64,000 nucleotides of DNA from Dendrobates tinctorius (taxonomy: Eukaryota). Positions within the stretch are counted from its first letter, which is position 1. Each line of letters opens with the position of its first letter. The stretch spans positions 930,001 to 994,000 of the forward strand of contig NW_027361792.1 of assembly GCF_039654945.1 (NCBI RefSeq), read 5' to 3'. Position numbers and translations under genes: made by a program. The notes beneath the pieces were generated by a model, which saw only the letters and a list, made by a program, of their open reading frames with translations, ran no database searches and was not told the origin of the DNA. Of the stretch, positions 1-29,200 are shown piece by piece.

Positions 1-59
1 CGGCAGCACTGATGCCCAAGCAATCAGCACAATCAGATGCGTGAAGTCCCATGTCTTAC

Positions 60-3860: not shown

Positions 3861-6420
3861 GCTGCAGCCGATCCATGGCTGCGGACCTCACTTGATGCAG
3901 CACCGAGTATAGAGGCACATCAGTTATCCCCCAAAGTGCTCCGATCAGCTCACAACATCCATGTAGGATGGCGGTGTCACGCACGCATCCTGCTCTCGGC
4001 CGCTGATCTGTGCCTCCTGCCGCACCAGAAGCGACGATATATACACAAAACTAGAAGTGTGGAGAGCCGCGCCGCCATCTGTACACAGACGTATCGCCGT
4101 CACGCCTGTGCACACATTCCTAGTGCGGCCTTGTTGGCTAATGGTAGCTGAGAATACTGCAAGCAGCGTGCCATCTGCCTCCTCCGAGCCGCACACCCGC
4201 CTCCATCTACAAACACCACACCGTCCTCCTATTCCCAGACTCCGCCGCAGCTCGTGTGGGCGCTGTTTAACCATTTACATTCACTTGCACAGGTTTTCGG
4301 GATTTCCTTTGTAACCATTTCATTCCACTTGGATGATTTTTTCCGCGTTTTTCAGGACATTATATGGTAAAGTGAAAGATAAGCACTACCAGCGCTCCGG
4401 GCGTAATGTACACGTGCTCCAACATTTGCACCGTTTTCCAGCTCTGGTATTAATCTACCCAGAATATGTTGGCCCCGCCCACTTCACATGGACCACACCC
4501 ACTTCCCAATATAGGCCACACCCACAAGTCAATTTGCAGTCACGGGTGCAGCGGCGGAGTCTGTGGTCGCCGGAGAGGATCCTGTAAGACCCCCATTGCT
4601 GCAGCGTGATGGGCGCACACACGCCGCTCCAGGCCGGCTAACCAGAAGAGGGCTTCTGTCCGGCGGCTTTTGGGGGGGGGGAGTGGGCTGTTTAATACTA
4701 AACTTGTGAAGTTTTTCAGCCTATTGAAATACATACATACATATATATATCAACCTTCACATTAGCGCCAAACTCTTCAAATATCTGATGCAGAATCCGC
4801 CGGTGCAAAAAAGACAGAACGTGATCCTGATGATAACCACCGGCCAGCGCCGACGGGCCGTAGACTATGATGGTGCCGACAGAATGAAGATGCGCTCGGT
4901 CGTGCGTTATTTTCGAGGATGTATGCCTACTGGGGCATCACACGATTACTCTGCCGCCACCATTATAGTCTATGGCCTCGCCCGGCGCATATGTCCAAAT
5001 CCTGTTTTGCGGGGGGTTCGGACATAAGAACGGGGGTGTAAGAGCACCCTAAGGCTTATACAGTTTTTCGGGGTTGCCGACGTAGTACAAGTGTAAACTT
5101 CGCCTACACAGCTGCAATAACGGAGCCAGGGCCGGTTGTTCAGGCAACAGAAACCATCATCGGTTCCCCTGCCGGTTCGTTCCCATGTACCGCTATCTGA
5201 TGAGGATTTTCTAGAAACACCTATGGATCTGTTTGCTGAAAAAGTGCAAATTTTCTGCACTTTTAGCCCTTTGCACCGCTAAGGGAGGACTCTGCAGTGA
5301 CATCCACAGAGCTGGATTTTCCATAATCTCCTGGCGCTGTAATCCACAGGGAATTATCTGCCGCATCTTCACGCCATAGAAACATGCGCCAGATCCATGG
5401 CATTTGTGCTATAGGGATCTAGCAGATCCATGGTGCCTTCATGTGGCAGTAACATATGGATCTCCGAATACTCGGGGGCGCTGTAAACACAATGGAGATG
5501 TTAGTGAGGTGATGGTAAGGCCGCAGTTTATTCCCGGCCTCCCGCGGGACGATGCAACCATCTGTGCGCGGGCAATGTGCCAATCAGGTCGCGTTTTGCA
5601 ACAAGAAGTCATAATCAGGATTATAAAGAATCTCCAGAGATAATGGGTTGATGGCAGGAACCGACACTGGAGCAGCGGGGGACCATGACCTACAGGCGAA
5701 ACGGAAAGGCGGCTGACAACGACTTCATCAGGAGTGAATAGGACAGCGAGATGAAGAGGCAGCGGGGACATGATGGATGGAGGGGGAAGAAGCAAAAGGG
5801 GGAAGGGAAGAGGAAGGGACCGGAGATCTGCAAATTAGGATGTCCAGAGTGACAGCAGATCAGGCAGGGAGATGAGCAGCTGCCGCCCGGCACTGGCCCC
5901 TCATATCCCCACTGCAAATAAGGGACTGGACGGGAATGTCTACCCGATACTACGGCTCCGAGAAATGAGACTCTGCATGACAAGCGAGAATGGTCAATGG
6001 GACACTTCTCAAGAAGAGCAAAACACACCAGACATTCCAGGTGCCGGCACCGAGCACTATAGAACACGGCAATAATCGCAGACCTCACTCACCGCTCCAT
6101 GGGGTCTCCTAGCACACCATAAAAAAAACGCCACAATTAAAGGGGAGGTGACATACGCAGGTCCCCACTCCTGGTAAACAGCCGACTGAGCCATCAGGGA
6201 GATGCAGGATTACAAGGCGGCCAGATAAGCGACAAGCACGGCTCTCACTGGGGAGTCCGAGGACCCCCGTATAAAACCCACACACAAATAACAGGGGTGT
6301 CAGAGGCAGAGCGCAGGGACAAACACGGGCCCTGTACACATAGGCTGCGACTGAGATATTGGGATCCACCTCCCGTTCCATCTACTCTACCCAACACAGA
6401 TCAATAATACAGATCTGGAT

Positions 6421-8128
6421 GTAGCCCCCCCCCCATCAAATAAAACGGACGCAGCCACGTGGCCCCCCCCATCATACACAATGGACGCAGCCACGTAGCC
6501 CCCCCCATCAAATAAAACGGACGCAGCCACGTAGCCCCCCCCATCATACACAACGGACGCAGCCACGTAGCCCCCCCATCAAATAAAACAGACGCAGCCA
6601 CGTAGCCCCCCCATCAAATAAAACGGACGCAGCCACGTAGCTCCCCCCATCAAATAAAACGGACGCAGCCACGTAGCCCCCCCCATCATACACAACGGAC
6701 GCAGCCACGTAGCCCCCCATCGTACACAACGGACGCAGCCACGTAGGCCCCCCCATCGTACACAACGGACGCAGCCACGTAGGCCCCCCCATCGTACACA
6801 ACGGACGCAGCCACGTAGGCCCCCCCATCGTACACAACGGACGCAGCCACGTAGGCCCCCCCATCGTACACAACGGACGCAGCCACGTAGGCCCCCCCAT
6901 CGTACACAACGGACGCAGCCACGTAGGCCCCCCATCGTACACAACGGACGCAGCCACGTAGGCCCCCCATCGTACACAACGGACGCAGCCACGTAGGCCC
7001 CCCCATCGTACACAACGGACGCAGCCACGTAGGCCCCCCATCGTACACAACGGACGCAGCCACGTAGGCCCCCCCATCGTACACAACGGACGCAGCCACG
7101 TAGGCCCCCCCATCGTACACAACGGACGCAGCCACGTAGGCCCCCCCATCGTACACAACGGACGCAGCCACGTAGGCCCCCCCATCGTACACAACGGACG
7201 CAGCCACGTAGGCCCCCCCATCGTACACAACGGACGCAGCCACGTAGGCCCCCCCCATCGTACACAACGGACGCAGCCACGTAGGCCCCCCCCATCGTAC
7301 ACAACGGACGCAGCCACGTAGCTCCCCCCTCATCGTACACAACGGACGCAGCCACGTAGCTCCCCCCCATCGTACACAACGGACGCAGCCACGTAGCTCC
7401 CCCCCATCGTACACAACGGACGCAGCCACGTAGCTCCCCCCCATCGTACACAACGGACGCAGCCACGTAGCTCCCCCCCATCGTACACAACGGACGCAGC
7501 CACGTAGCTCCCCCCCATCGTACACAACGGACGCAGCCACGTAGCTCCCCCCCATCGTACACAACGGACGCAGCCACGTAGCTCCCCCCCATCGTACACA
7601 ACGGACGCAGCCACGTAGCCCCCCCATCGTACACAACGGACGCAGCCACGTAGCCCCCCATCGTACACAACGGACGCAGCCACGTAGCCCCCCCCCCATC
7701 GTACACAACGGACGCAGCCACGTAGCCCCCCATCGTACACAACGGACGCAGCCACGTAGCCCCCCCCCCATCGTACACAACGGACGCAGCCACGTAGCCC
7801 CCCATCGTACACAACGGACGCAGCCACGTAGCCCCCCATCGTACACAACGGACGCAGCCACGTAGCCCCCCCATCGTACACAACGGACGCAGCCACGTAG
7901 CCCCCCCATCGTACACAACGGACGCAGCCACGTAGCTCCCCCCATCGTACACAACGGACGCAGCCACGTAGCCCCCCCCATCGTACACAACGGACGCAGC
8001 CACGTAGCCCCCCCATCGGACACAACGGACGCAGCCACGTAGCCCCCCCATCGGACACAACGGACGCAGCCACGTAGCCCCCCCATCGGACACAACGGAC
8101 GCAGCCACGTAGCCCCCCCATCGGACAC
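6421..8128. repeat. Minisatellite, ~35-38 bp unit CATCGTACACAACGGACGCAGCCACGTAG+C-run, ~45-50 copies, in MADD intron 1
   Basis: Direct tandem repetition; variable C-run; blocks of variant units. Confidence 0.97.
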
Positions 8129-8448
8129 CTCGGATACTATGCAGGACCCACGGCGTCCCCTCTATGCTGAGCCTATAGAAGACCCCCAATGTGTCAGGGG
8201 CTCGCACTACCCTCATCTGCAGCACAGTGGATGATGACTACTCCCATCCCGATACTGGACGGTGCGCACCACTGACTGCAGCCGCACAATGTCGCCGCCG
8301 TCAGCACGACCCACAAACCGGGGAAAAGTGAAAGACCAGGAGAGGAGGGGGGGAGACACATGGACATCGGCGTATGGGGTCCCGGGGCAGACAGATGTGA
8401 ACGAATCGGAGGGCGAGTCTATATACTGGTGGTACATATGGTCCCGGG

Positions 8449-8716
8449 GCACACACGGACGTCGGTTATACGGGGGGGGCGTCCCGGGGGAAAAAAAGAA
8501 AAGAAAGTTGGTTATACGGGGGGGGGTCCCAGGGCACACACGGACGTCGGTGTACGGGGGGGCACACGGACGTGTTATACTGGGGGGGTGTCCCGGGGGG
8601 GGCACACGGACGTGTTATACTGGGGGGGTGTCCCGGGGGGGGCACACGGACGTGTTATACTGGGGGGTGTCCCGGGGGGGCACACGGACGTGTTATACTG
8701 GGGGGGGTCCGGGGGG
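8449..8716. repeat. Short G-rich minisatellite GGCACACGGACGTGTTATACTGGGGGGGTGTCCCGGGGG (~40 bp unit)
   Basis: About 5-6 degenerate tandem copies. Confidence 0.85.
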
Positions 8717-8927
8717 GCCCAGCACCCGGGCCCTGACTCTCCGCACTACCCTGCGCCCAATGACGGGTGACCCCGGGCCGCCCTCCTGAGAGGGTCCTGC
8801 CGCCTCCTCACACGGCCGTGACTGGCCGCACTGGGGCAGGAGGACGTCAGGGAGCCGCAGGATGAATGGCGCAGGGACACCGCCTCCCAGGGGGCAGCGC
8901 ACGGCGGACACACCGGCTGTCACCGAC

Positions 8928-9240
8928 CTGTCACCGCCGCGGTCTCTCCGGAGCCGACACCGACCATCAGCGCGCACCGGCTGCTCCCCGCCCGCCCATC
9001 ACCAGCTGCAGCAGGGCCGAGCCACGCCCCCTCTCGCCTGCTGCCCACGACGTGACGCACGTCCAATCCTGGCGTCACGACGTCTTCTGCTTTGTTTCTA
9101 TGGCGACGGTGTGAGGCCTAGAAGCAGCACCAAAGCCTTAGTAGAGTACTAAACCAAAATGTATGAAAATAAAATCTGTCAGTGACCCTGTGCAGCTCAT
9201 GTGCTGAGACGTCATACAGGGGGCTGGTCACGTGTCCCGG
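8928..9240 (-). promoter_or_regulatory. MADD: Putative MADD CpG-island promoter and non-coding exon 1
   Basis: CpG-rich unique DNA between two VNTRs; candidate donor CAG|gtcggt at 8927; GCCACGCCCC (Sp/KLF), TGACG/CGTCA half-CREs, CCAAT, X-box-like GTTTCTATGGCGAC at 9094-9107, GTCACGTG at 9227-9234. Confidence 0.6.
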
Positions 9241-9442
9241 CCCTCACACTCCCAGGGGCCCTTCTGCACTATAGCTTGCTCATTTTCTGTTTCTGACACC
9301 ATTTTGTCCGCACGACTTTCTGCTCTTTAATTTCCTTTTTTTAGGCGTCAAAGTGACCAAAAATCAGCGATTCTGACACATACATATGACTTCACAGACA
9401 TGTACATTGCAGACCGGGGGGTCCGTGAGGAGGCCATGACGG

Positions 9443-11508
9443 CAGACAAGCTGCTGTATAACGAGCAGACGAACCGCCGTATAACGAGCACGAGCAGACG
9501 AGCCGCCGTATAACGAGCAGACGAGCCGCCGTATAACGAGCAGACGAGCCGCCGTATAACGAGCAGACGAGCCGCCGTATAACGAGCAGACGAGCCGCCG
9601 TATAACGAGCACGAGCAGACGAGCCGCCGTATAACGAGCAGACGAGCCACCGTATAACGAGCACGAGCAGACCAGCCGCCGTATAACGAGCACGAGCAGA
9701 CCAGCCGCCGTATAACATGCAGACGAGCCTCCGTATAACGAGCAGACGAGCCGCCGTATAACGTGCAGACGAGCCTCCGTATAACGAGCAGACGAGCCTC
9801 CGTATAACGAGCAGACGAGCCTCCGTATAACGTGCAGACGAGCCGCCGTATAACGAGCAGACGAGCCGCCGTATAACGAGCAGACGAGCCGCCGTATAAC
9901 GTGCAGACGAGCCTCCGTATAACGAGCAGACGAGCCTCCGTATAACGAGCCGCCGTATAACGAGCAGACGAGCCGCCGTATAACGAGCAGACGAGCCGCC
10001 GTATAACGAGCAGACGAGCCGCCGTATAACGAGCAGACGAGCCGCCGTATAACGTGCAGACGAGCCTCCGTATAACGAGCAGACGAGCCTCCGTATAACG
10101 AGCCGCCGTATAACGAGCAGACGAGCCTCCATATAACGAGCAGACGAGCCGCCGTATAACGAGCAGACGAGCCGCCGTATAACGAGCAGACCAGCCGCAG
10201 TATAACGAGCAGACGAGCCGCCGTAAAACGAGCAGACGAGCCGCCGTATAACGAGCAGACGAGCCGCAGTATAACGAGCAGACGAGCCGCCGTATAACGA
10301 GCAGACGAGCCGCCGTATAACGAGCAGACGAGCCGCAGTATAACGAGCAGACGAGCCGCCGTATAACGAGCAGACGAGCCGCCGTATAACGAGCAGACGA
10401 GCCGCAGTATAACGAGCAGACGAGCCGCCGTAAAACGAGCAGACGAGCCGCCGTATAACGAGCAGACGAGCCGCCGTATAACGAGCAGACGAGCCGCCGT
10501 ATAACGAGCAGACCAGCAGCAGTATAACGAGCAGACGAGCCGCCGTATAACGAGCAGACGAGCCGCCGTATAAGGAGCAGACCAGCCGCCGTATAACGAG
10601 CAGACGAGCCGCCGTATAACGAGCAGACGAGCCGCCGTATAACGAGCAGACCAGCCGCCGTATAACGAGCAGACGAGCCGCCGTATAACGAGCAGACGAG
10701 CCGCAGTATAACGAGCAGACGAGCCGCAGTATAACGAGCAGACGAGCCGCCGTATAACGAGCAGACGAGCCTCCGTATAACGAGCAGACGAGCCGCCGTA
10801 TAACGAGCAGACGAGCCGCAGTATAACGAGCAGACGAGCCGCCGTATAACGAGCAGACGAGCCGCCGTATAACGAGCAGACGAGCCGCAGTATAACGAGC
10901 AGACGAGCCGCCGTATAACGAGCAGACGAGCCGCCGTATAACGAGCAGACGAGCCGCAGTATAACGAGCAGACGAGCCGCCGTAAAACGAGCAGACGAGC
11001 CGCCGTATAACGAGCAGACGAGCCGCCGTATAACGAGCAGACGAGCCGCCGTATAACGAGCAGACGAGCCGCCGTATAACGAGCAGACCAGCAGCAGTAT
11101 AACGAGCAGACGAGCCGCCGTATAACGAGCAGACGAGCCGCCGTATAAGGAGCAGACCAGCCGCCGTATAACGAGCAGACGAGCCGCCGTATAACGAGCA
11201 GACGAGCCGCCGTATAACGAGCAGACCAGCCGCAGTATAACGAGCAGACGAGCCGCCGTATAACGAGCAGACGAGCCGCCGTATAACGAGCAGACGAGCC
11301 GCCGTATAACGAGCAGACGAGCCGCAGTATAACGAGCAGACGAGCCGCCGTATAACGAGCAGACGAGCCGCCGTATAACGAGCAGACGAGCTGCCGTATA
11401 ACGAGCAGACGAGCCGCCGTATAACGAGCAGACGAGCCGCCGTATAACGAGCAGACCAGCTGCCGTATAACGAGCAGACGAGCCGCCGTATAACGAGCAG
11501 ACCAGCTG
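9443..11508. repeat. Minisatellite, 23 bp unit GCCGCCGTATAACGAGCAGACGA, ~90 copies
   Basis: Direct tandem repetition; 23-aa periodicity in the spurious 725-aa ORF. Confidence 0.98.
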
Positions 11509-11639
11509 CCTCTTGGCCTCGATTTTGAGGATCGTCACCATCTAAATTACGACCACTAAATTTTATGGCGTCCTATTTCCTGGAATAACCGGATTGGCGG
11601 CCTAGACGGGCGAGCGGCCTCCTCATTGTGTGGGTTTAA

Positions 11640-11997
11640 GGCTGTGTGCACACGCTGCGGATTATGTGCGGATTCATCCGCGCGGATTTTGTAAAATCCG
11701 CAGGTGAAACCGCAGGTCAAAAGACCTGCGGTTTTACCTGCGGATTGCTCTGCGGTTCCTCAATGGAGGAGATGGCAAACCGCAGGAGAATCCGCAGAAA
11801 GAATTGACATGTCAATTCTTTCTGCGGATTGAAAACCGCAGATAATCCGCGCGGAAAATTCCGCACCGTCTGCACTGCGGTTTTTGATTCCCATAGGGAA
11901 TCATGGTACTGTACACCGCAGCAAAAACTGCTGCGGGTCCGCAGCGGCCAAAACCGCTGCGGAACCGCAGCAAAATCCGCAGCGTGTGCACACAGCC
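11640..11997. mobile_element. PIF/Harbinger-like MITE
   Basis: TIR GGCTGTGTGCACACGCTGCGG...CCGCAGCGTGTGCACACAGCC with TAA/TTA flanks; sister copy at 54501-54810. Confidence 0.85.
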
Positions 11998-12488
11998 TTA
12001 TGGGAATTCTTCCTCGTGTGCAGAGAAAGCTCCATTCAGAATAATGGCCGAGTATTCGCTTGTTGAAGTGTTTTTAGTGTAGTCCACGGACAATAACTCG
12101 GCCTCCGATGCGTTCGTACGACAGAAGTCACTTCTCCATACACAAAGGCGTCTCTGTGGAAGACATTTACAGGAGGAGTAACTGAGGAACAGCACGACAC
12201 ACAATGCCAGGAAAAGAAGCCCCAGAATCGATATTTCAGGACGTTTACAAAAATATATGACAGCGAGATTACAGGAACAAGATGCCACGTGTGTTTATGG
12301 AGGATTTCTGAGGTGCCACCAACTGCTATATGGGAAGACGAGATGAGGATGCTTTGTGAAAGCCCAGTATGGAAGATGTCTCCTATCCCCATCACTGGGA
12401 CCCCCACCGTTCTTGGGAACAGGGGGCCTTTCTGAATTGAGCAGAGGTAGAGCAGCACACCTCCGATCCATTTATTCTCTATGGGACT

Positions 12489-13100
12489 GTCAAAGATAAC
12501 AGCCGGGGAAGGGGTCGTACATATCCCACCGCTGCCAACAGTTTGTCAAGGATAACAGCCGGGGCAGGGGGCACACAGATCTCACCGCTGCCAACAGTTT
12601 GTGAAGGATAACAGCCGGGGTGGGGGTCACGCAGATCCCATCGCTGCCACCAGTTTGTCAAGGATAGCGCCGGGGCAGGAGTCACACAGATCCCATCGCT
12701 GCAACCAGTTTGTCAAGGATAACAGCCGGGGCAGGGGTCACGCAGATCCCATCGCTGCCACCAGTTTGTCAAGGATAGCGCCGGGGCAGGAGTCGCACAG
12801 ATCCCATCGCTGCAACCAGTTTGTCAAGGATAACAGCCAGGGCAGGGGGCACACAGATCTCACCGCTGCCAACAGTTTGTGAAGGATAACAGCCGGGGTA
12901 GGGGTCACGCAGATACCACCGCTGCCACAAGTTTGACAAGGATACCAGCCGGGGAAGGAGTCGCACAGATCCCATCGCTGCCACCAGTTTGTCAAGGATA
13001 GCGCCGGGGCAGGAGTCGCACAGATGCTATGGCTGCAACCAGTTTGTCAAGGATAACAGCCGGGGCAGGGGTCACGCAGATCTCACCGCTGCCACCAATT
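12489..13100. repeat. Minisatellite, ~55-56 bp unit (GTTTGTCAAGGATAACAGCCGGGGCAGGGGTCACGCAGATCCCATCGCTGCCACCA), ~11 copies
   Basis: Tandem units with alternating variants, starting inside MITE-like sequence (tctatgggactgtcaaagataacag). Confidence 0.9.
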
Positions 13101-13599
13101 TGTTAGGGGACAAAACTTCACTGCCTCCAATCATCAGGACAATTACGCAATTGAGTGATGGACGAGCTCGCAGCTGCTTCCACTACTAGGCCGGTTATCG
13201 GGGGACTCACAATGAGCATATGATATGTACACCTCCGACTCCAATGCATGGAATATATATATATATATACACACACACCCCAGTACAGTCACTGCCAACT
13301 CCACAATAACAAAAGGGACTACTATCTGCCACCACCAATCGTTTATACAGGCTGATTGGACTTCTGTTACAGGTGCTTCAGGGGTGCGGTTTACAGAGTA
13401 AGAGGAACAGTACTATTACATTTTATTTTATATGTTTCATGCAGACGGATAGGCAGTATTTATAAAAAAAATACAAAGATGTTACAAAATGGTAACAAAA
13501 CAATAATGTATATACAATCACATAAAATAAAAAGGATTAACAAAAGAAAAGTACTAAATCTGGAGTTGCAGGAGTGGCTCTCATCTTTATGAAAGGAAG

Positions 13600-14200
13600 C
13601 TCTCTGAATAGGAAAATGGAGCACTCTCACAGCGAACTATGTCTTCCAGAATAAACAAAGACAGACTACCAAACTTTCATTTTTATTAGATCAAGGTTAC
13701 ACCCTTATACCTCCCTTTTTTGAAATCATTTGGGGTTGGTTATGGGATGTGCTAGGTGTGTTAGAAATTTATGAGATCCCCAACTTTCAGAATATCTTCG
13801 CCCCTGGAGGTCCCAGGTGGTAGACATTGTTATCATGTTTCTTATCGCAATTTTACCTATCCATAGAGATGAAATATGACATGAATAGCATCTTCCATAG
13901 GTCCAATATTAAGATGGAGGGATTCTGCCGGCCGTACGGTGATGTGAGTGATTACATTATTTTCATCCCTTTGCTACAGCGCCAAAAATATATCTCCCAT
14001 AAATATTGGATCGATGCAAACCCCAATATTCATCACCACCTCCAAAAAGTCTCAGAAAAAATCCCTTGAACAGAGAAAGCCCCTGTACTTATCTGTCTCT
14101 GAATAAATTAATCTCAGCTTTGGTGTAAAGCTCCCAGAATAGCAATTACCCAGCTGGCAGGACATCGTGCATCCATCACTACAGATCTTTGCAATCTAAT
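13600..14200 (+). mobile_element. Possible highly decayed L1/Tx1-type ORF2 C-terminal fragment
   Basis: Broken translations such as KYISHKYWIDANPN...EKIP*TEKA resemble non-LTR ORF2 C-termini; weak. Confidence 0.3.
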
Positions 14201-14220
14201 TTTTACAATTGCGTGCAGAT

Positions 14221-16659
14221 TGTCATGATCCAATGTGGATCTGACAGTTTCAATGCACAAAGTGAACTTTTTTTTCTTTGGCTTGGTGCCAAAGTGGGTT
14301 GACTGACCCCGGTGGCCATTAGAATTATTACACGTGGTGTCTAAATTCGCCAGTTGGAGGCGGTGTATCCTGCTGCACGTGTTTATTATTTAAATTCGCC
14401 CCACTGGAGGCGGTGTATCCAGGGTCACGCGTGTCATGGGTTCGCCTTGCGGTACTCGCTGCATCCAGACACACGTGACCGTGACATTATCAACAACTTT
14501 ATATTTCTTTTTTCTGGTGAGCTTTGGCCATGTAGAGACCGCTGAGTAATTGCTGCCGGGCCCCATGGAGGTGAGTGGGGAGCGGCAAGGTGTTTAGAGC
14601 CGCTGCAGCAGCACTTATCAGGGTCTGGGGCCTCTGCTCAGGGAACCAGGAAATCAAAATGGTGGCTTTGGCAAATTGTGGGTCTGGCAAAAGCCCCCTA
14701 GAGTCGCTGCTGGGGAGCGGGACTTGTTCATACAGGCGGTCGTACCCAGACAGGTGGGTGGAGTTGGTGATCCCTATGGTGCTGTCTGGGGTGCCCCGAG
14801 GTGAAGGGGTACGTCCCTGTAGTGAGCAGACTGGTGATAGTCCGCGGGGCTGACGCCAAATCTTCTATACCACCGAAGAGGTCGCCCCCTCCTGGTCGTG
14901 TGGAGGAAGGCAACCAGCGAGTGTATATTTCCTCCATATTCCGATTCCCTTCACCTCCAGGTGTGAGCAGCAGGTGCGCTGCGGGGGAGTAGGGACAAAT
15001 CTCAACTCTCGCCATGAACCAACCCTGGGAGGGTAGACCTCATGGTGAAAGGGTTGGAGGGTGGTGTCCCCTGGTGAATAGCGGGGGTGCGAGTGTGGTG
15101 ACACAGGGGGACGCCTCTGTTGTCGAGTCCAGAAGGAGTTCACCAAATATATGACAAACGAATGTGTGGCAATAAACGTTCAGGTCCGGACCTGTGTGTG
15201 AACGAGTGTGTATGGGTGCCACCAAAAAACATCTTGTGGAAGTGTGTTGTGGAGTCTGATCAGCTCATAGCAAACATACACATACATAAACTCGCTCCCC
15301 AGGTCGGCGCTGTGGAGATGAGTGGTGCCTCCAGACCATTTATTGCCAATACCAGCGGTGCATTTGTCATAAACCTGTAGTTTCAGGTGGTGGTGGGGTG
15401 AATCCAGGATCTGGGCGTCCCCGCTGTTGGTGTTTCCCTAATGAGGAGTGGTCTTGAGGGTCCAGAGGCCCCTCATTAAGGAGGGGGTACTGTCATGATC
15501 CAGGCTGGATCTGACAGTTTAAATGCACAAAGTGAACTTTTTTTCCTTTGGCTTGGTGCCAAAGTGGGTTGATTGCCCCCGGTGGCAATTAGAATTATTA
15601 CACGTGGTGTCGTTCATTCTAAGTTGCCCGGTGGTGGTGAGTGGTATCGCACCTTAGTTTTAGGTTTAATGTGCACTTAATTACAAATCAGGTGCAGGTG
15701 TTAGGCTCTATAAAAGGGAGCCAGGTGGGTTCAATCACGGTGGGTGATATTGATTGTGTTCGTCATTTGGGAAGCAAGCCTGGGTGATGAAGGAGCTGAA
15801 CATGAGTCCTGCGCAGCGCAGCCAGAGGGGACGAGTGGCAGCTAGGTGGTCTTCAAGAAGGGCTGGCATGGCATGGTGGAGTCACAGTTTATGGTGTTGG
15901 CAGGAAGTGCTTGCATGGCTTGGTGGAGTGACGACTATGGAGAGAGTTGCACTCACCATGCTGGACCTGGTTGCTGAGAGCTGGACTCAAGCATGCTTGA
16001 CTTTTTGGGCAGGAGCTGAACTCATCTTTGGGACTCTGTTACTGGACAGATGCAATTGGTGGTGGACTCTGCTCCAAGGCTGCTCTATGGTGAAGGATCC
16101 AGTTATGGTGATGGACCCGGGTGGAGGAGAAGATGCACACAGGTGGTGGGCTCGGTTGCTAGGAGCGTACGCAACAGAGCAAAGCTAAGTGGTGTTTCCC
16201 CTGTTTTGTCATTTTCCCTCATGTGTGTTTTAGTGCAGTGGTGGGATTAGTTTCTGCACCGATCAATTCCCTAGTGAGGGTTTAGGTCAGGACGAGCTAG
16301 GGTTTTTAGGTTCCTGTGCGTCGCCCGGTGCGGAACCGGCATAGGGAACGTTAGGAGTACAGGGACACTGGCTCAGGGGAGCTCAGGAGGTCTCCACTTC
16401 CCTATTCCCTATCGCAGGACCCACCATTGTTAATGTTTCCCAGGTTCCCCTTATTGTTTAAATTCACCTTATAGGAGGCGGGTTTTCCAGTCTTGTATAT
16501 ACGTGTAATGTCTAAATTCGCCAGTTGGAGGCAGTGTATCCGGCTGCACATGTTTATTATTTAAATTCGCCCCACTGGAGGCGGTGTATCCAGGGTCACG
16601 TGAGTCACATGGGTTCACCTTGTGGTACTCGCTGCGTCCAGACACACGTGACCGTGACA
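14221..16659 (+). mobile_element. Internally deleted Gypsy-like LTR retrotransposon: 5' LTR 14221-14486 (deleted), internal 14487-15490, 3' LTR 15491-16659
   Basis: Both LTRs start TGTCATGATCC and end ACACGTGACCGTGACA; 5-bp TSD CAGAT at 14216-14220 and 16660-16664; PPT AAGGAGGGGGTAC before the 3' LTR. Confidence 0.9.
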
Positions 16660-17800
16660 CAGATATTGCGCCTGCAACACGGATGAAGACTGCGGCCGTG
16701 GCACGTGGCGCTGATCAGCGCAGTTTAAAAATGACAGCAGCTAAAAGTATTTTCATTGCTAATGGCCGCGGGCAGGACAGCGGTTTTACTACAGAACTGT
16801 GCTGCTATTAACAATCAGAGCACAGCTATTATTTCACATCCGCTCCTTGGTCCCCCGACGCGCGTTGGCCGTGATGCGGTGGTGACTCGTCAGCACCGTA
16901 CAGAACTAACAGGAATTTCCACCTCTGATTTACGAGTGCAAACTCCACTGTGTATTACAGCTCCACGTGGATGAGATTTTAATAAATATGAAATCTGCAG
17001 CTTGTCGTTCTACGTTGTGGATTTTAATGCAGCGGGTGACATCTGCCCCATTTCCACAAAAAAAAATCTGCATTTTATTTCTGTTGTGAGAATGATAGGT
17101 TTCTGAAATGTCCCTTAGCTGTATAGTAGAACCTTGTGAGGAGTCAGGTGGGCGGTCCCAGACTCCTTAGGAGACACCTAGGTCTGGCCTAACATCACAC
17201 TTGCTGGAATGCACCATTACAAGGCAGATCTAGTGCATGCGCAGTGAAGCACAACGTATTGGCCTCGGGGCATTTTATAATCCTTTCACCACCCTATATA
17301 ATGTTATGGCAACGGTCTAAGCATCCTGATGAAATTCTGGCTGTTTGCAGTCACCACTAGGGGGAGCTCATTGCAATATGAAGCTGATCGCAGTGACTCA
17401 GGTCATTGTCGTGTATTGGGGAATTACTATTTCAGCTTTTTCCTGCACATAGATGTGTACGGTACTTTCTGATTAGTTCATGGAAGGTGAAACCATTGGT
17501 GTCCTCAGTTAATTGCTTGTGACAGGCCAGGACACGTTTCGCTGTATTTTACAAGCTCGGCTGCCATCTTTTTATAGCTGGTAATTACTGCTTCCTGGTG
17601 CAATGTCCTCGCACATTCCCGAGCTCTCAGACTGCACGGGGTTAAAGCCGAAGTACAAAGAGTGATCCAGTCACAGACTGCCGGTCCCTGGTATATACAG
17701 GCGCTTCTCACAAAATGAGAATATCATCAAAGAGTTAATTTATTTCAGTTCAGAGTCATTACACACAGAGTGATCTATTTCACGTGTTTATTTCTGTTAA

Positions 17801-18306
17801 AGGGAATCTGTCACCTGGTTTTGGCGGGCGATGAAAACGAGGTCGGTCCGGTCCGATGGGTGGTGTTCCCGATGTGTGCCGCCTCCCCATCCTTGGCTGC
17901 CGTCCACAATTTTTTGAGGAATAGGAGTAGGTCTCTGCCACTTGTTGCGCATGCGCTAAGCATTCTTGGCTAGCGCACGCGCAGTATGCAAAGCTGAAAA
18001 GCCTGACTGCGCATGTGCCGGTTAACTAAGCCCCGGAACACAGCAAAATACTTCCGGGGCTTAGTTAACCGGCGCATGCGCAGTCAGGCTTTTCGGCTTT
18101 GCCCGCAGTTGGGCAAAGCATACTGCGCGTGCACTAGCCAAGAATACTTAGCGCACGCGCAACAAATGGCGGAGACCTACTCCTATTCCTCAAAAAACTG
18201 CGGACGGCGGCCAAGGATGGGGAGGCGGCACACATCGGGAACGCCGCCCATCGGACCGGACCAACCTCGTTTTCATCGCCTGCCAAAATTAGGTGACAGA
18301 TTCCCT
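17801..18306. mobile_element. T2-type (TTAA) foldback MITE, near-perfect palindrome
   Basis: TTAA|AGGGAATCTGTCACC...GGTGACAGATTCCCT|TTAA; arms of ~240 bp complementary around a short spacer at ~18040-18050. Confidence 0.93.
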
Positions 18307-18730
18307 TTAATGTTGATGATTATGGCTTACAGCCAATGAAAACCCAAAAGTCATTATCTCAGTCAATTAGAATACTTTATATCACCAGCTTGAAAAATGA
18401 TTGTAAAATCTGAAATGTTGTCCTACTGAAATGTCTGATCAGTAAATGCACTCAATACTTGGTCGGGCTCCTTCTGCATCAATTACTGCATCAATGAGAC
18501 GTGGCATGGAGGCGATCAGCCTGTGGCACTGCTGAGGGGTTATGGAAGCCCAGGTTGCTTTGATAGCAGCCTTCAGCTTGTCTGCCTTGTGGTGTCTGGT
18601 GTCTCTCATCTTCCTCTTGACAATACTTCATAGATTGTCTATGGGGTTAAGGTCAGGAGAGTTTGCTGCCAATCAAGCCCAGTGATACTGTTGTTTTTAC
18701 ACCAGGTATTGGTACTTTTGGCAGTGTGGA

Positions 18731-20017
18731 TGGGTTGCCCTCCCAGGGCTGTGGGGTACTCGGTATCGGGCCGGTGTCGGCGGGATGTGTCACAGCAGCG
18801 GTGACCCGGTCCATGGCCCTGGGCGCCTAATTAATAGGGGAAGTTTGAATGGTGGAATGTACAGTAGTTAATGGAATAGTTCGTGACACCACCTGTGGTG
18901 TTTGGCAAGTGAGATGTTAAGCCAACGCTGCATGCAGATCCTCTGGGGCTGGTGGTGTGTTGCAGCCAAGATGGTGAAGCTCCCCACAGGTGGAGCTGTA
19001 GTCCCAGGGCAGTGTAGATGTAGGGGTAGAGGAGAGGCGCAGGCGGTGTAGAAGCTGGTACCCAGATGTAGCGGTGCTGGGTGTGTTAGCGCAGGAATAA
19101 TTGGAGGACACCAGGGCATGCAGTTCCAAAGCTTTTCTCACATGCTGTAGTACACACAGGTGCCTGCCTCCGTGCTGTGTCCTCCGGGTCAGATGGAATG
19201 CTCCCTTCAAACACTCCGCCAACATGTACCTCTCTGAACGTCTCCTCTTATAGCGCCTTTGGTGTGAAGTACTCCCAGTACTGAGTTACACTGGAGTGCC
19301 TCCTGACAGATGTTCCCAAGTACTCTGCTTGTATGGCAGACAGCTGTAGCCTGCTTCGGGGACTCCTTACTCCTGAGTCCCGGCTCTCTATCCAAGTTGC
19401 TGTTGTGCCCCCAAGTCTTAGATGGGAGTAGTGCATTTACAGCCCACTACTCCACCGGTGTCTGCTGCAGAACCATTAGTATCCATACAACCTCGGGGAC
19501 CGGGCCCCGGCCTTGCGCTTAGAACTTCTAGGCAGGGTTCCCTCCTAACCCACGTCCTCTGTTCCCTTTTACTCCTTCGTTCCGTACTAGTCTCTCCTTC
19601 TTATGGAAGATCAGGTTTCTGTTCAATGTCTTTCTCCTTCTTTCCTTTCCCGTGCCAGCAGACCCAGGTCACTGAGATCTGCTGCAGCACCTCCTTCCTC
19701 CATCCCTCTCCCAGGGATCTTCTCTCCTCACTCTCTCCCACTGACTGACCTGAAATCCTAAACCTTCCCGCTCTTTTATGTATTCTAACTCCACCCGCCT
19801 CCCAGCACGTTTCGTGTTCCAAGCAGGGAGCCACCAAAGGTGCTCTGCTACACTCCAAGCAGGGAGCCGCAATGTGGCTTTGCTGAACTACCGTGTTGTG
19901 TGGGATGCGAGTGTTGGAGCGTGGTCAGGAGCCTCCAACCTACCTGGATGGTGGGGCACTACACCTCAGGAGGAGGTGCAGTACCTCTGTGGCAACTGAA
20001 TCCTCAGGGGCGCCACA
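18731..20017 (-). mobile_element. Solo LTR (Gypsy/ERV-like), copy A
   Basis: TG...CA ends with short inverted termini; 4-bp TSD TGGA at 18727-18730 and 20018-20021; splits the Tc1 transposase; homologous to 48632-49910. Strand is tentative, from an AGTAAA-like signal in copy B. Confidence 0.88.
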
Positions 20018-20986
20018 TGGACAGGGGCCAAGTCCTGCTGGAGAATGACATTTCCATTTCCAAAAAGTTTGTCGGCAGAGGGAAGCATGAAGAGCTCTAA
20101 AATGTCCTGGTAGACGGCTGCGCTGACTTTGGTCTTGATAAAACACAGTGGACCTACACCAGCAGATGACATGGATCCCCAAACCATCACTGATGGTGGA
20201 GACTTCACACTAGACCTCCAGCAGCTAGGATTGTGGCCTCTCCACTCTTCCTCCAGACTCTGGGACCACTGACTACAGTCCGGTTCTTCTTCTCCTTGGC
20301 CCCGGTAAGACGCTTCTGGTGTTGTCTATTGGTCATGAGTGGCTGACACAAGGAATGTGACACTTGTAGCCCAGGTCCTGGACACGTCTGTGTGTGGTGT
20401 GAAGCAATGACTCCAGCAGCAGTCCACTCCGTGTGAATCTCCCCCACATTACTGAATGGCCTTTTCTTAACAATCCTTTCCCGGCTGCGGTTATCCCGGT
20501 TGCTTGTGCACCTTTTTCTACCACACTTTTTCCTTCCACTCCACTTTCCATTAATATTCTTGGATACAGCACTGTGTAAACAGCCGGCTTCTGCAGCAAT
20601 GACCTTTTGTGGCTTCCCCTCCTTGTGGAGCGTGTCAGTGACTCAGCCCTTATCAAAGTGAATGGGTTCTGAGCTGCAGTACTGAGAACGGCCACTACAT
20701 GGTGTACGGAGCCGCCGATGCTGATAACAGCTGATCTGTGGAGGGCACAGTTGTCGGACCCCACTGATCTGATACTGATGACCTCCATGAGGCCTCCTTA
20801 GTCGTGTGCTGTGTTTATGGCCTGGAGACTTACAGAGGATGCAGAGCAGGCCCGCGATGCAGCGTCATAGGGACCGGCGCAGACCCCTCTATAGCGGCAC
20901 TGACTATCATCACTTACATTCTCCCCATACTGGATCCTTTTATTGTGTTCAGACGTCGGAATGGCCGCCGTTGACGTCTCCTCTTA

Positions 20987-21790
20987 GGCTGGTTTCACAC
21001 TTGCGTTTTTTTTTGCGGGATTTTAGCGCTAAAAAACGCATGCGATTTTTTTTCCTATACTTTGCATGGGATGCGCTTATGTGCGCATACACATGCGTTT
21101 GTATGCGTTTTTCCGCGCATGCGTTTTTTTGCGGTATGCGCTCGGGAGCACAAAATGCATCCTGTTGCATTTTTTGAGCGTCCGACTTGCCTCAAAAAAA
21201 CGCATGCGCACGCAATGCGTTTTTTTACAGCAAGACACCCATTATAAGTCTATGGGTGCGCATATGTGCGCATTGGCATGCTTATGTATGCGTTTTTTTG
21301 CGCATGCGTTTTTTTTTTACCATTAGTTGGACAATGGAATTTAGGGGTTTGGGTTAGAGTTAGGGTTAGTTAAGGGGGTTAGGGTTAGCTAGGGTTTANN
21401 NNNNNNNNNNNNNNNNNNNNNNNNNNNNNNNNNNNNNNNNNNNNNNNNNNNNNNNNNNNNNNNNNNNNNNNNNNNNNNNNNNNNNNNNNNNNNNNNNNNN
21501 NNNNNNNNNNNNNNNNNNNNNNNNNNNNNNNNNNNNNNNNNNNNNNNNNNNNNNNNNNNNNNNNNNTTGGGTAGTGTGAGGGGCCACCTAATGTTGGAAA
21601 AAAACGCAAACGCGGTAAAAACGCACTAAAAACGCATACAAAAACGCATAAAAACGCTGCGTTTTTTTCATGCATGCTCATAAAAATGCTTGAAAAAAAC
21701 GCAGCATTTGTATGCGTTTGTATGCGTTTTTTCAATGCGTTTTTTTGCGGGAAAAACGCGCTGCAAAAAAAATCAAGTGTGAAATTAGCC
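20987..21790. mobile_element. PIF/Harbinger-like MITE with internal TTAGGG-like repeats and an assembly gap
   Basis: TTA|GGCTGGTTTCACACTTG...CAAGTGTGAAATTAGCC|TTA. Confidence 0.85.
21399..21566. other. Assembly gap (168 N)
   Basis: Run of n. Confidence 1.
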
Positions 21791-22779
21791 TTAGTCCTCT
21801 GACACTTTCTGCATTATCTCTGACCGCAGCCACATACCGGACGTCCCAGGTCATCAGGATGGAGAATTCTGGAATAACAAGATCGTCTGTAGGATCAGAG
21901 CCGTGTCAGGGCTGCCACGGAGAAGAGTAAGGGTGCAGATAAGGGGTTAACCCCTGTCAGGACATACAGAGGATATGGTGGGGTCCCCACTTCTGTCTTA
22001 CAGCTGCAAAGATTATTGCTCCAAAGGCTCAGGGGGGAGACAAAATCCAAAAACGAGCCCTTACTCGGCATCCAGGGGTCCAGCGCTGCTGCTCCAGTCA
22101 TTGATGATCGACTGCAGCCAACAACAGCGCTGCAGCCAATCACTGCGACCAGCTGTAGAGGGCATGAGCCTCTGAGCTCAGCGATTGGCTGCAGAGTGTT
22201 GGACATGCCGTCACAGCGGTGAGAGGCAGCGCCGGCCCCCGGCAGGGTGAGGAGGAGACCGCTTTATGGGACTTTGTGTTCTATGGGGGGGTTAATCCTT
22301 ATAGTGGGGTCTCTGTATCCTTATTGACCAGCAAAATATAGTCATGTGATGTGAATTATAATCCAAGAGGTCAGAAAAAAATAAAATAAAAACATGATTC
22401 AAAATAAGGCAACCGGAATAAAAAAAAAATCCGAAAAGTGATTATTTAGGGCAAAAAAAAGTAAAAATGAAACAATAAATCTGACATCGTTGCAATCATA
22501 TTGTCTCGCAGAATAAAGAGCTGTCAATTACACCAAAGGGCCATAACTGATCTGGAAAGTCTGTTTTCTGTTTTTCTTCATCCTGCCCCAAAAAAGTGTA
22601 AAAAAGTGATAACGTCGTATGGAGCAGAAAATGTTACCAACAACAAGAAAAGGACAAGTATCAGCCGTCACGTCGCTGCGTCGACGGAAAGTTGTAAAAT
22701 CAGTCAAGATTCTACCTTATTTCTGCAGCACAAGAGAAAACTCCAAAACTGCCATCACTGTTTATAGCCCATCCCTCAC

Positions 22780-23180
22780 CTCGCCACTAGAGGGAGCCTC
22801 ACATCACTCAGTATCCTTCTTATTGCCGTTCCACGCTCGGCCACTAGGGGCATAAGGAGAGTACGGCTGGTGATTTGCGCAGTTATGTCACATGACCTGA
22901 CGTCATTGGAAAGGCAGCCATCTTTGCAATCCATGACTAACGGCAGCCATATTTGTACTCTTGTTTGTTGCCGGGATACTGTTCCCCACAAGAAATGCGG
23001 CTCTGGGCTTGGGGTTCCGGGGTTTGCTAAGTCAGAACACGTGACATCATACCTGGAAGCAGCCCATAGTGTAGCGTCCACCCTGGGGGCAGCCATGTTT
23101 GTACTCTCGTGTTGCCTGGATACCATTCCCCACAGGAAGTGCGGCTGTGCACCTGTGGTTCCGGGGCCGGACATTTTGCG
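22780..23180 (+). promoter_or_regulatory. ACP2: ACP2 promoter with CLEAR/M-box-like E-boxes and CRE, CCAAT, YY1, RFX, ETS motifs
   Basis: GTCACATGAC at 22887-22896, TGACGTCA at 22898-22905, ATTGG, CACGTGAC at 23038-23045, GTTGCCTGGATAC, CAGGAAGTG; directly upstream of the ATG. Confidence 0.75.
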
Positions 23181-23294
23181 ATGGCTGCCGGCTGCGGCTC
23201 CGGATCCCTGCTGGGGGCGGTCGTGCTGTTATCGGGGCAGATTCTGGCCGCCGTTCACACCGCGCCGGCCCGGCAGCTGCGCTTCGTCACTGTG
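23181..23294 (+). CDS. ACP2: ACP2 exon 1 (signal peptide...RQLRFVTV)
   Basis: ATG at 23181, donor gtgagt. Confidence 0.92.
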
Positions 23295-26200
23295 GTGAGT
23301 AGGAGAGGACGGCGGCGGCCATTACACAGACCCCGGAAGTGGCTCCGTCCGGGGGGAAGGGGTCCGCTCAGTGTCGCCATTAACCCCTGAACCCCCGGAG
23401 CGGTTTTCGGTTTTGCGTTTTTCGCTCCCCTCTTCCCAGAGCCGTAACTTTTGTATTTCCCGTCACTATGGCCATGTCAGGGCTTATTTTTTGCGGGACG
23501 AGTTGCACTTTTGAAAGACCCCATTGGTTTTACCATGTCGTGTACTGGACAACGGGGAAAAAAGTTCCAAGTGCGGTGAAATTGCAAAAAAAGTCAATCC
23601 CACACTTGTTTTTTATTTGGCTTTTTTGCTGGGGTCACTAAATGCTGAACCTGAGCTGCCGCTATGATTCTCCGGGTCATTACGAGTTCATAGACACCAA
23701 ACAGGTCTCTTTCATCTAAGTGGAGAAAAAAAATCCAAAAAACAATTGCGCCGTGTTCCGATCGCCTCTGTGTAGCAGAATTGCAGCCTCGCTGTGAGTG
23801 GCGGAGGGACCGGGCGCGGGGGGGGGGCACAGGGACAGGACACGGCGGTAGCAGAGAGATGGAGCAGGTCAGGGGCGGAGGGACCGGGCGCGGGGGGGCA
23901 CAGGGACAGGACACGGCGGTAGCAGAGAGATGGAGCAGGTCAGGGGCGGAGGGACCGGGCGCGGGGGGGGGCACAGGGACAGGACACGGCGGTAGCAGAG
24001 AGATGGAGCAGGTCAGGGGCGGAGGGACCGGGCGCGGGGGGGCACAGGGACAGGACACGGCGGTAGCAGAGAGATGGAGCAGGTCAGGGGCGGAGGGACC
24101 GGGCGCGGGGGGGCACAGGGACAGGACACGGCGGTAGCAGAGAGATGGAGCAGGTCAGGGGCGGAGGGACCGGGCGCGGGGGGGCACAGGGACAGGACAC
24201 GGCGGTAGCAGAGAGATGGAGCAGGTCAGGGGCGGAGGGACCGGGCGCGGGGGGGGCACAGGGACCGGACACGGCGGTAGCAGAGAGATGGAGCAGGTCA
24301 GGGGCGGAGGGGCCGGACACGGCGCGGGGAGGCTCAGGGACCGGACACGGCGGTAGCAGAGAGATGGAGCAGGTCAGGGGCGGAGGGGCCGGACACGGCG
24401 CGGGGAGGCTCAGGGACCGGACACGGCGGTAGCAGAGAGATGGAGCAGGTCAGGGGCGGAGGGGCCGGACACGGCGCGGGGAGGCTTAGGGACCGGACAC
24501 GGCGGTAGCAGAGAGATGGAGCAGGTCAGGGGCGGAGGGGCCGGACACGGCGCGGGGAGGCTTAGGGACCGGACACGGCGGTAGCAGAGAGATGGAGCAG
24601 GTCAGGGGCGGAGGGACCGGGCGCGGGGGAGGCTCAGGGACCGGAAACGGCGGTAGCAGAGAGATGGAGCAGGTCAGGGGCGGAGGGACCGGGCGCGGGG
24701 GAGGCTCAGGGACCGGAAACGGCGGTAGCAGAGAGATGGAGCAGGTCAGGTGCGGAGGCGCCGGACACGGCGCGGGGAGGCTTAGGGACCGGACACGGCG
24801 GTAGCAGAGAGATGGAGCAGGTCAGGGGCGGAGGGGCCGGACACGGCGCGGGGAGGCTTAGGGACCGGACACGGCGGTAGCAGAGAGATGGAGCAGGTCA
24901 GGGGTGGAGGAGCCGGGAGCGGGGGAGGCTCAGGGACCGGACACGGCGGTAGCAGAGAGATGGAGCAGGTCAGGGGCGGAGGGACCGGACACGGTGGGGG
25001 GGGGGAGTCTTGGGGACACCGCTGGGGCAGAGGCACCTGGCATGGCGAGTGGAGGCTCGAGGATGTTGCAGGAGCAGAGTTACCAAGCACAGCCACAGAG
25101 GAGGCGCAGGGGGTGTGGGGTCTCGGGAGACGTGGGGACGCAGGGGGCTGACGGACCAGGACACGTGGGATGCAGTGGGTGATACACTCGGGCGGTGGCC
25201 GCACAGTGACTGACTGATCCCGCCATGAATGCTCAGCCTTCTGCAGTGGACATTGCGCCCCTCGGTCTCTCGGACCCCTCAGTGCGGATGACGTTCGGGT
25301 CGCGTCTGTTCCGATTTTCTGAGTCATCTTACGAGAAATCAGTGACGATTCGCAGTCACGCCGCTCCTCATCCTCCGACGTGCCGCCAATCACCATTGAT
25401 TCCTGAGCCGATGATTTCCCTGCGGAGAATCTGCCAGTGTGAATGAGCGCCTGCGGTGAACACGGTATTGTGTGCGGGGACGCTCCGCTGATGGCGGCTT
25501 TCGCTGTGGTTTATCTTCCAGGTGTATCGGCACGGCGACCGCTCCCCTGTGAAAGCCTATCCCACCGATGTGCATCAGGAGAGCGCCTGGCCCCAGGGAT
25601 TTGGGCAGCTGACGCAGGTAGGAGTGGCGCCATGTATTATTTTATTTGATTTTAAATGTAGCAATTATTTATTTTTCTATTTAAGACACTTTTATGATTA
25701 ATTTTTACCTCTTAACATTGTCCTGAATATTAATGCTAAAGTCCATGCTGCGTAATATTATAATATATCTTTCTAGTGGTCGGAGCTTGGTCCTATTCTG
25801 ATACAGAGCTCCAAATCCTCAGCTCTCCCATCACCAATCTCTACCATTGTAAATGCCTGCGGCCACCACCAGAGGGCGCTCCCTGCACTGCATTTATTGA
25901 TCTCCCTGTCTGTACAGTGTGTAGTGAGCTCCCCCTGCTGGTGAGTTGATATTACTGTCAGTGTATGCAGAGAGCGCCTCCTGGTGTTGAGATGCCAAAT
26001 AATGATCTAGAAATTAGCAGGAAACTAATCTATGTACTCGGCATCTAGTTTTCTGAGTTTTTGTGAAACTTTATTGTTTAGATTGGGATGAGGCAGCACT
26101 GGGATTTGGGACAGGCCCTGCGAGCGCGTTACAAAGGATTCCTGAATGAGTCGTATGACAGGCACGAGGTAAGAACTTCTCAGGGCTGGGGAACGTTGGC

Positions 26201-29200
26201 ACAATATCATGGCTTCTTATATTTGTTTCCTGTCCCTTCCCCAGATCTATGTGAGGAGCACAGACGTGGACCGCACGCTGATGAGTGCAGAGGCCAACCT
26301 GGCCGGCCTGTACCCACCTGCGGGTGCAGAGGTTTTCAACCCAAACATCAGCTGGCAGCCGATCCCGGTGCACACAGTGCCGGACTCTGATGAGCGGGTG
26401 AGTAATGGTGGCGGTGCTCAGGTACACAAGGGCGTGTGCGGACCTCCTGGCATGGGAATAGCAGAGCTGAGTCTCATCACGCCTTTATGGAGATGGAGAA
26501 ATTCCTTCCCGTCAGTCGTGTCTGTATTTTTAACCCTACATTTGTACTTTGTATTGATGCTGCATTTTACCATTTGATCTGCTGAAAAACGGGGAAAAAT
26601 TCCCGCTCCGCAGCCACTTACTGCCATTGTCAAAGATCATCTGCAGCGAGCAAAGGCAGGAGCCGCATATAACGTACACCCGCTCCTACGTGCGGCACAT
26701 GATGGCAAGGGTTAAGGGCTTTTAGTGGTGGTAGTTTTTGCTGTTGACCCCATATTTTTTTTTTTTTATTTCAGCTCTTAAAATTTCCAATTCTACCTTG
26801 TCCGAAATATCTGAAGCTACAAGAAGAGACGCGGCACTCGCCTGAGTATGTGAACAAGACCAGAGACAATCTGGTAAGTCCAGCGGAGGCCGTGTGCCCG
26901 GCGGAGTCTGTGCCCCCTGCTCGTCACATCCCGCGCTTCATCCTGACACCTCTGTATTCTGTAGGATTTCCTGCACATGGTCGCCAATAAGACCGGACTT
27001 CCGGATTGCTCCCTAGAGTCTGTATGGACGGTCTCCGACGTCTTGTTCTGTGAGGTCAGTCATCTCTAGAGTCTGTTCGTGACGCTGAATTCTGCTGAAA
27101 CCTTTCCAATATCGGGGGGGGGGGGGATTTGTCATTAGTGTGCGATTGTGAGGTCTCTGCACCCCCCCCATCCCCAGGACCCCACTAGTCAGATCCAGAC
27201 TCATGCGTGTCTGGTTCTCACGCTCGTTAGTCCCTGCAAATCCACTCAGCCATTGTTGTGAATGCATTTCGGTTTATGACATCGCTGGCAGTGAAAGGGT
27301 TATTGGACCTTCATCAATCGAAGGGAAGGGGCCGCAATGGCTGACGGATGTGACCCCCCCCCACACACACACACACACACACGTGGGGATCTCCAGATAT
27401 CGCTAAATTACAATTCTAATGATGCATTGAGATCACATGGTGTTGTGGGATGTTGAGAGTTGTAGCTTTCACAAGGTGGGGGGCAGAGTTGTAGTCCATT
27501 CACATCGCATACATGGTAAATGGCGCCATAGGGGTCTGTCGGACCCTCGGGCTGATGGACGCCGCTGTGTGGGATCAGTCACCGGCACCTGTGAAATATA
27601 AAGAACAGCTACCCATGTCATGTACATGAAATCAACATCATTATAGCGAGCTGTGGCCGCCTGTGACCGGTACCTGGCCCCCCGGCCTCCATCTGTGTCT
27701 GTTACATGGATGCAGCCTCTAGTCTATGGACAATGGAGGCCACTGTCACAGCCTCCATGTACAGCCTCCATCGGGAGACTTTGCCAATCAGAGCTGCAGA
27801 GGCACGCTTCTCACCCTCGTTCTTCTGCCCCTTTGTCATTGGGGTCTTCAGCTCCTGTGCCCCCCAATATAACTGATGATGGCAGAAAGGAAAAAAAAGA
27901 CTCTGGCTCTTTTAAATGTTTATCTTTCATTCAGAATTATGAATTTATTCTTTTTTCCCGTAGTCGAGACACAACCTGAGCCTCCCGTCCTGGGCGACAA
28001 GAGACGTCCTGGAGCGACTGAGGGACTTGAAGGATTTCAGCTTCAGGTTCCTCTTCGGGATCATCAAGCAGGAGCAGAAGGCGCGGCTGCAGGGAGGTGA
28101 GAGCGGGGGGACGCTACCGCCAGCCGCTTCGGCCGGTGACCCGATGGTGCCGCATGCAGCCAGAACAGGCCGGCGCCGGCTGTCGGGCACTGTTATAGGT
28201 AACGTGTTTTGCTTTCTGCAGGTGTATTGGTGGATCAGATCCTGAAGAATCTAACAGCCGCGGCACACAGCGACTCCGCAGGCCTGAAGCTGATCGCGTA
28301 CTCAACAGTAAGTGGCTGATTTATGGACGTGACGCAACCTGAATTTCTGGTTTGCCTTTTATGGACCCTTTTGAGGACACAATTGTTGTTTCTATCCTCT
28401 ATGCATCACTGAACATAGCACACTGCAGCATGAGTTCCCAATGATCAGTCAGCGAGCTCATCCTCTGGTCTGTACCTCTCCTCCATCCTCTATGCATCAC
28501 TGTACATAGCAGACTGCAGAATGAGTTCCCATTGATCAGTCAGCGAGCTCATCCTCTGGTCTGTACCTCTTATCTCTCTTCTCCCAAAACATCATTTGAA
28601 CTACATTAATGACCAGAGATGAAAAAAGATGAGAGCAGCAAACAACCAGAACAATGGCGGTCTGCGATTTGTGGCCGTACATAGAGGATGCAGAAGACAA
28701 ACAATCCCGATAGTAAAATAACAAATCCCCCGAGGGGCCTGTGTCATTTAGGCAGATTCCTGCCACTCCTCGGTATCAGTAGGATCCTACGGGTACAAGT
28801 CACGCATTGCATATATCTGTCACCTGTCCCCCCATATCTATCCCCACACGAGGACCAACCACCCCCAGCCTTGACATTTACCTCGGGGGATGGTGGCCAC
28901 CAGATATATCATGGTCTCTCGTCTTGTAGTCTGCAGTCATGATTTCTGACCCTGTCTCCTCAGCACGACACCACGCTGGGCGCCCTGCAAATGGCGCTGG
29001 ACGTCTACAATGGAAAACAGGCCCCGTATGCGTCCTGCCATATATTCGAGCTGCATGAAGAGTCTTCGGGGTAAGACACTCGCAGTAATCGGCTGCTATC
29101 GCAGATATTTTCCCCCAGTGACACGTGCAGTGGAGACGGCGACATTGTAAAAGTTACTGATATGTTCCCATTAGATGTGGCGCAAATTGATTCACAGGTG

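Follow-up and report, generated by a model that had tools for sequence, protein, structure and literature searches.

No NR1H3 (LXR-alpha) gene in its syntenic position between ACP2 and MADD in the poison frog Dendrobates tinctorius

Introduction

LXR-alpha, which is encoded by NR1H3, is a cholesterol-sensing receptor and one of the master regulators of the metabolism of cholesterol and lipids in mammals. In this study we analyzed the place where NR1H3 is expected in the genome of the poison frog Dendrobates tinctorius. This locus is covered by a stretch of 64,000 nucleotides (positions 930,001 to 994,000 of contig NW_027361792.1, assembly GCF_039654945.1), which we refer to as the window and which carries the genes MADD, ACP2 and DDB2. 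All positions are those of the window. In the human genome the three genes and NR1H3 form a block in 11p11.2 that reads DDB2(+)-ACP2(-)-NR1H3(+)-MADD(+). In the following, the interval from the first coding exon of MADD to that of ACP2, in which NR1H3 would be expected, is called the slot.

The closest described case is that of Xenopus. Fonseca et al. reported that LXR-alpha was lost in Xenopus tropicalis and X. laevis (Genome Biol Evol 9:222, 2017; PMC5381633). In both species the genomes and transcriptomes contained LXR-beta only, and at the LXR-alpha locus the synteny was conserved without any LXR-like sequence (PMC5381633). Among the gnathostomes examined in the same study, all had an LXR-alpha orthologue "except amphibians", which retain LXR-beta as their only LXR (PMC5381633). 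A reciprocal loss of LXR-beta (NR1H2) was described for birds and teleosts, and the whole LXR-beta locus was reported to be absent in birds (PMC5381633). Our literature search on LXR in salamanders or caecilians and on later work on the amphibian LXR loss found nothing beyond this publication.

The locus analyzed here resembles that of Xenopus in that the syntenic surroundings are conserved and contain no LXR sequence. It differs in that the species is a poison frog and not a pipid, and our analysis adds a description of the slot content at base level, namely variable number tandem repeats (VNTRs), miniature inverted-repeat transposable elements (MITEs) and relics of long terminal repeat (LTR) and Tc1-like elements. 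With birds and teleosts it would share the asymmetric loss of one gnathostome LXR paralogue, which leaves a single oxysterol receptor. In contrast to these groups it would be the other paralogue that is gone, and the locus in the frog window is conserved but empty.

Results

Along the window we found a uDENN/DENN gene that is presumably MADD on the minus strand, ACP2 on the plus strand and DDB2 on the minus strand (Table 1). Except for the absence of NR1H3, this arrangement corresponds to the human block in reverse complement. If an NR1H3 gene were present here, its expected strand would be the minus strand. Similar to the human block, ACP2 and DDB2 lie tail to tail and the 5' end of ACP2 points into the slot. 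The presumed MADD is transcribed away from ACP2 and leaves the window at its left edge.

We tested the whole slot of ~22 kb and a little sequence beyond it. This is wider than the interval of 9240-22780 considered before, whose borders are putative non-coding gene ends. In total, 662 stop-to-stop six-frame pieces of at least 20 amino acids from 1-23295 were compared with Pfam at a cut-off of E<=1, short pieces falling entirely within VNTRs being omitted. Neither the nuclear-receptor zinc finger (zf-C4, PF00105) nor the ligand-binding domain (LBD; Hormone_recep, PF00104) was found in any of them. This set comprised 278 pieces of at least 30 amino acids from 8790-23295, in which matches to families other than these two were scattered and at chance level, the 150 longest pieces from 1-8998, for which Pfam returned only the uDENN and DENN domains of MADD, and the remaining 234 pieces of at least 20 amino acids up to 21799, which had no Pfam match. 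The flanking genes provided the positive control, as single exons of MADD, ACP2 and DDB2 were recovered in the same piece-wise manner.

Moreover, motifs of nuclear receptors were searched for in each of the six reading frames of the 64-kb window. No exact match was obtained for the C4 zinc-finger spacings (C-x2-C-x13-C-x2-C and C-x5-C-x9-C-x2-C), the P-box or the LBD signature, for which the helix 3-4 pattern was used. A fuzzy scan against consensus patterns of the two zinc fingers and the LBD signature reached at most 8/21, 6/13 and 6/12, and shuffled sequence scored equally. Rfam families and tRNAs were also absent from 1-21799. An intact NR1H3 would have offered about seven independent chances of detection; therefore, it is excluded from the assembled sequence. 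Two claims of an original prediction made from the same sequence hold at the level of exon identities, strands, Pfam profiles and motifs: DDB2, ACP2 and the presumed MADD keep the mammalian order and relative orientation, and the ACP2-MADD interval contains no C4 zinc-finger or LBD exon.

The only run of N in the window lies within the slot and is enclosed by a MITE. The two terminal inverted repeats (TIRs) of this element are 83% complementary and flank the gap on both sides, as had been predicted, and a sub-terminal arm at 21006-21041 pairs with 21735-21770. Short internal inverted repeats of a GC-poor "AAAAACGCA" type are numerous on either side of the gap. A degenerate array of TTAGGG-like, telomere-type repeats at 21330-21398, also inside the MITE, directly abuts the left edge of the gap and probably caused the unresolved stretch. 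A second full copy of the MITE, which we sought to calibrate the length of the element, was not present in the window. The gap thus lies between the paired TIRs of one MITE and beside TTAGGG-like repeats, and therefore it cannot plausibly hide a gene. The sequence at this place is non-coding, so that no reading frame is concerned.

The slot contains several classes of repeats (Table 1). Two VNTRs lie in the interval 9240-22780, whereas the 36-nt array in the MADD 5' region and the 76-nt array that follows shortly after the signal-peptide exon of ACP2 fall just outside of it. Besides the MITE with the gap, there is a MITE of 364 bp with a further copy in the window and a near-perfect palindromic element of the foldback type. 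The LTR-element relic has one of its direct repeats at 14221-14486, and the other is split into 15491-15611 and 16509-16659 by an insertion of ~0.9 kb (15612-16508). Its internal part of 1 kb had no Pfam match and no recognisable protein domain. Further to the right, a dispersed repeat to which no class was assigned may be what had been described as a solo LTR. The open reading frames (ORFs) of the Tc1-like transposase relic had no Pfam match, and their nearest Atlas clusters were all Tc1/mariner/Sleeping Beauty transposases with a score of 0.83, which is a lead only. The prediction that the interval consists mostly of repeats thus stands for the VNTRs, the three MITEs and the LTR relic, whereas Tc1 is kept as this lead and the label "Gypsy" has no support, as the internal part of the LTR relic matched no Pfam family. 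About 5 kb of 9240-22780 are not accounted for by repeats that are recognisable within the window.

Table 1. Features of the window with their positions, strands and the evidence for them
Feature	Position	Strand	Evidence or remark
MADD large 5' coding exon (uDENN and start of DENN)	59-697	-	Pfam uDENN E 6e-15, DENN E 0.0025
MADD first coding exon, with ATG	1267-1344	-	Translation; presumably the MADD N-terminus
Slot from MADD to ACP2, expected place of NR1H3	1345-23180		Pfam, motif and Rfam/tRNA scans
VNTR, 36-nt unit, 47.5 copies, MADD 5' region	6427-8128		TRF
CpG-rich stretch, GC 0.65-0.71, CpG observed/expected 0.75-0.82	8250-9000		Base composition; mostly outside tandem arrays
VNTR, 23-nt unit, 88.6 copies	9442-11510		TRF
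MITE, 364 bp, 30-nt TIRs 97% complementary	11637-12000		Second copy at 54497-54802
VNTR, 56-nt unit, 11 copies	12488-13103		TRF
LTR-element relic	14221-16659	+	Two 266-bp direct repeats, 93% identical, TGTCA...TGACA ends
Palindromic foldback-type MITE, 514 bp	17797-18310		193-nt arms 93% and inner 51-nt arms 96% complementary
Dispersed repeat, at least 1.3 kb	18730-20017		79% identical to 48631-49910
Degenerate Tc1/mariner-like transposase relic	~19966-20797	-	ORF reading and Atlas lead
Gap-bearing MITE, ~810 bp including the gap at its estimated length of 168 N	20983-21794		TIRs 20983-21012 and 21765-21794
Assembly gap, 168 N	21399-21566		Sole N run of the window, inside the MITE
ACP2 (lysosomal acid phosphatase) coding span	23181-30449	+	Exon translations, Pfam, PDB
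Coding part of the presumed ACP2 exon 1, with signal peptide	~23181-23297	+	Local translation MAAGCGSGS...RQLRFVTVV
VNTR, 76-nt unit, ~16 copies, GC >0.7, dominating ACP2 intron 1	23800-25001		TRF
DDB2, approximate coding span	~36567-40019	-	PDB matches and exon reading

The flanking genes were identified from individual stop-to-stop six-frame pieces, their exons being searched singly and not as a joined spliced model. The gene at the left edge certainly belongs to the uDENN/DENN family, and the nearest Atlas clusters of its large exon were uDENN/DENN with a score of 0.94. A PDB search with the MADD exon gave no relative, and the Atlas names are at the family level only. The translation of the exon with the ATG resembles the N-terminus of human MADD, and together with the synteny this makes MADD the presumptive name of the gene. 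Upstream of it, the CpG-rich stretch is a candidate for the promoter and non-coding leader of MADD, whose leader exon is predicted near 8250-9240.

In ACP2 the active-site exon of the histidine phosphatases (YRHGDRSP) lies within 25492-25698, and the exon piece at 26173-26574 matched Pfam His_Phos_2 (E 2.8e-8) as well as prostatic acid phosphatase in the PDB (E 3e-18). The signal-peptide exon is presumably exon 1 of ACP2, judging by its likeness to the protein and by its continuity with the RHGDR exon. A reading of 22774-23110 as an orphan divergent first exon was not preferred, as the signal-peptide exon begins just to the right of it; the stretch would more simply be the promoter and 5' untranslated region of ACP2, whose start site is predicted near 22800-23180. 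The final exon, with its end at 30449, encodes a transmembrane segment and a tail with the sequence GYQHV. At this C-terminus (30300-30449, plus strand) both the transmembrane segment and the tyrosine motif are kept, and the tail is near to the mammalian lysosomal targeting tail, as expected for a lysosomal ACP2. The assignment to ACP2 as opposed to ACP4 or ACPP is based on this tail and on the neighbouring genes and not on a tree. DDB2 itself was the top PDB match of the exon piece at 38111-38764 on the minus strand (E 5.8e-25), and further exons are readable.

The following observations concern the surroundings of the slot and its repeats. The CpG content is raised around the palindromic element. 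Long tandem arrays with repeated peptide-like translations occur at 31400-32900 downstream of ACP2 and at 42440-45950 upstream of DDB2, and the DDB2-ACP2-MADD block as a whole is unusually rich in minisatellites. Beyond DDB2, an open piece of 319 amino acids at 57665-58621 on the plus strand has an endonuclease-like N-terminal motif (...LWNARSICNKL...), which we take to be typical of ORF2 of long interspersed nuclear elements (LINEs), and it is a probable LINE fragment.

Discussion

In our view the empty slot is very probably the result of one old loss of NR1H3 which is shared with Xenopus and was followed by a build-up of repeats in the vacated interval. NR1H3 would have been lost in an ancestor common to Xenopus and this frog, at the latest on the stem of the living frogs, and a loss of that age would leave no recognisable exon. 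The slot of ~22 kb would since have been filled by VNTRs, MITEs and the LTR and Tc1-like relics. The absence of NR1H3 in D. tinctorius would then be the same event as the published loss in Xenopus, the function of the oxysterol receptor would be performed by LXR-beta in this frog, and a copy of NR1H3 elsewhere in its genome would not be expected. The slot is empty, the synteny is intact and the amphibian record of Fonseca et al. (2017) points in the same direction; therefore, loss is more parsimonious than translocation. The original prediction had named both and had referred to anurans keeping only LXR-beta. The latter agrees with the published record (PMC5381633), and of the two options loss is the one that it favours together with the empty slot.

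Several points weigh against a shared old loss, and they bear on the other explanations that we considered. Our searches cover the 64-kb window, and NR1H3 may have been relocated to another place in the genome. We consider it very unlikely that the gene moved and was not lost, with an intact LXR-alpha orthologue outside of the window, since only LXR-beta is found in both Xenopus genomes and transcriptomes (PMC5381633) and no nuclear-receptor motif occurs anywhere else in the window. Moreover, the absence from the slot was determined with Pfam profiles and motif scans, and His_Phos_2 matched just two of the eight evident ACP2 exon pieces. The sensitivity of the Pfam scan at the exon level is therefore limited, and a decayed or very divergent LBD exon could escape it. 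Together with the ~5 kb of 9240-22780 for which no recognisable repeat accounts, this modest sensitivity would allow for a decayed NR1H3 pseudogene or highly divergent exons in the slot below the detection limit, which we regard as very unlikely, too. In conservation the zinc-finger model and motifs far exceed such an LBD exon, and the zinc-finger domain likewise exceeds His_Phos_2. The fuzzy scores of the zinc fingers and the LBD signature did not rise above chance. If the loss predates the split between Xenopus and the neobatrachians, neutral decay would have erased such a relic, and a relic would itself still count as a loss.

Two further points on the same side concern the assembly and the naming of the left neighbour. 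The length of the gap is an estimate only, and the name MADD is presumptive, being derived from the uDENN/DENN family, the likeness of the N-terminus and the synteny. An artefact in which NR1H3 is present at the locus but was dropped, either in the gap or by a collapse of the VNTR-rich stretch, would fit with one gap of estimated length and with several long VNTRs, which are hard to assemble. We nevertheless consider it very unlikely. The gap is enclosed by matching ends of one MITE, and simple arrays such as the TTAGGG-like one on its left typically leave a short stretch unresolved. The length of 168 does not correspond to a placeholder. From a gene of about nine coding exons, some exons would also remain in the assembled flanks, and there are none. 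In addition, the Xenopus locus is equally empty (PMC5381633). We therefore prefer one old loss shared with Xenopus over a relocation, a hidden relic and an assembly artefact.

There is only a slight chance that LXR-alpha was kept outside of the ACP2-MADD slot or was lost independently of the loss in Xenopus. If this were true, such a relocation or independent loss would complicate the history of the amphibian LXRs beyond the single early loss that is assumed. As it stands, our analysis provides another example of a loss that is already known, which leaves the general picture unchanged and opens no new question. Frogs with LXR-beta alone are a published case of asymmetric copy loss after the vertebrate genome duplications. 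With the window, a further frog lineage is found to have an empty syntenic LXR-alpha locus. This supports an old, shared loss and shows that the vacated space was not deleted but refilled by repeats.

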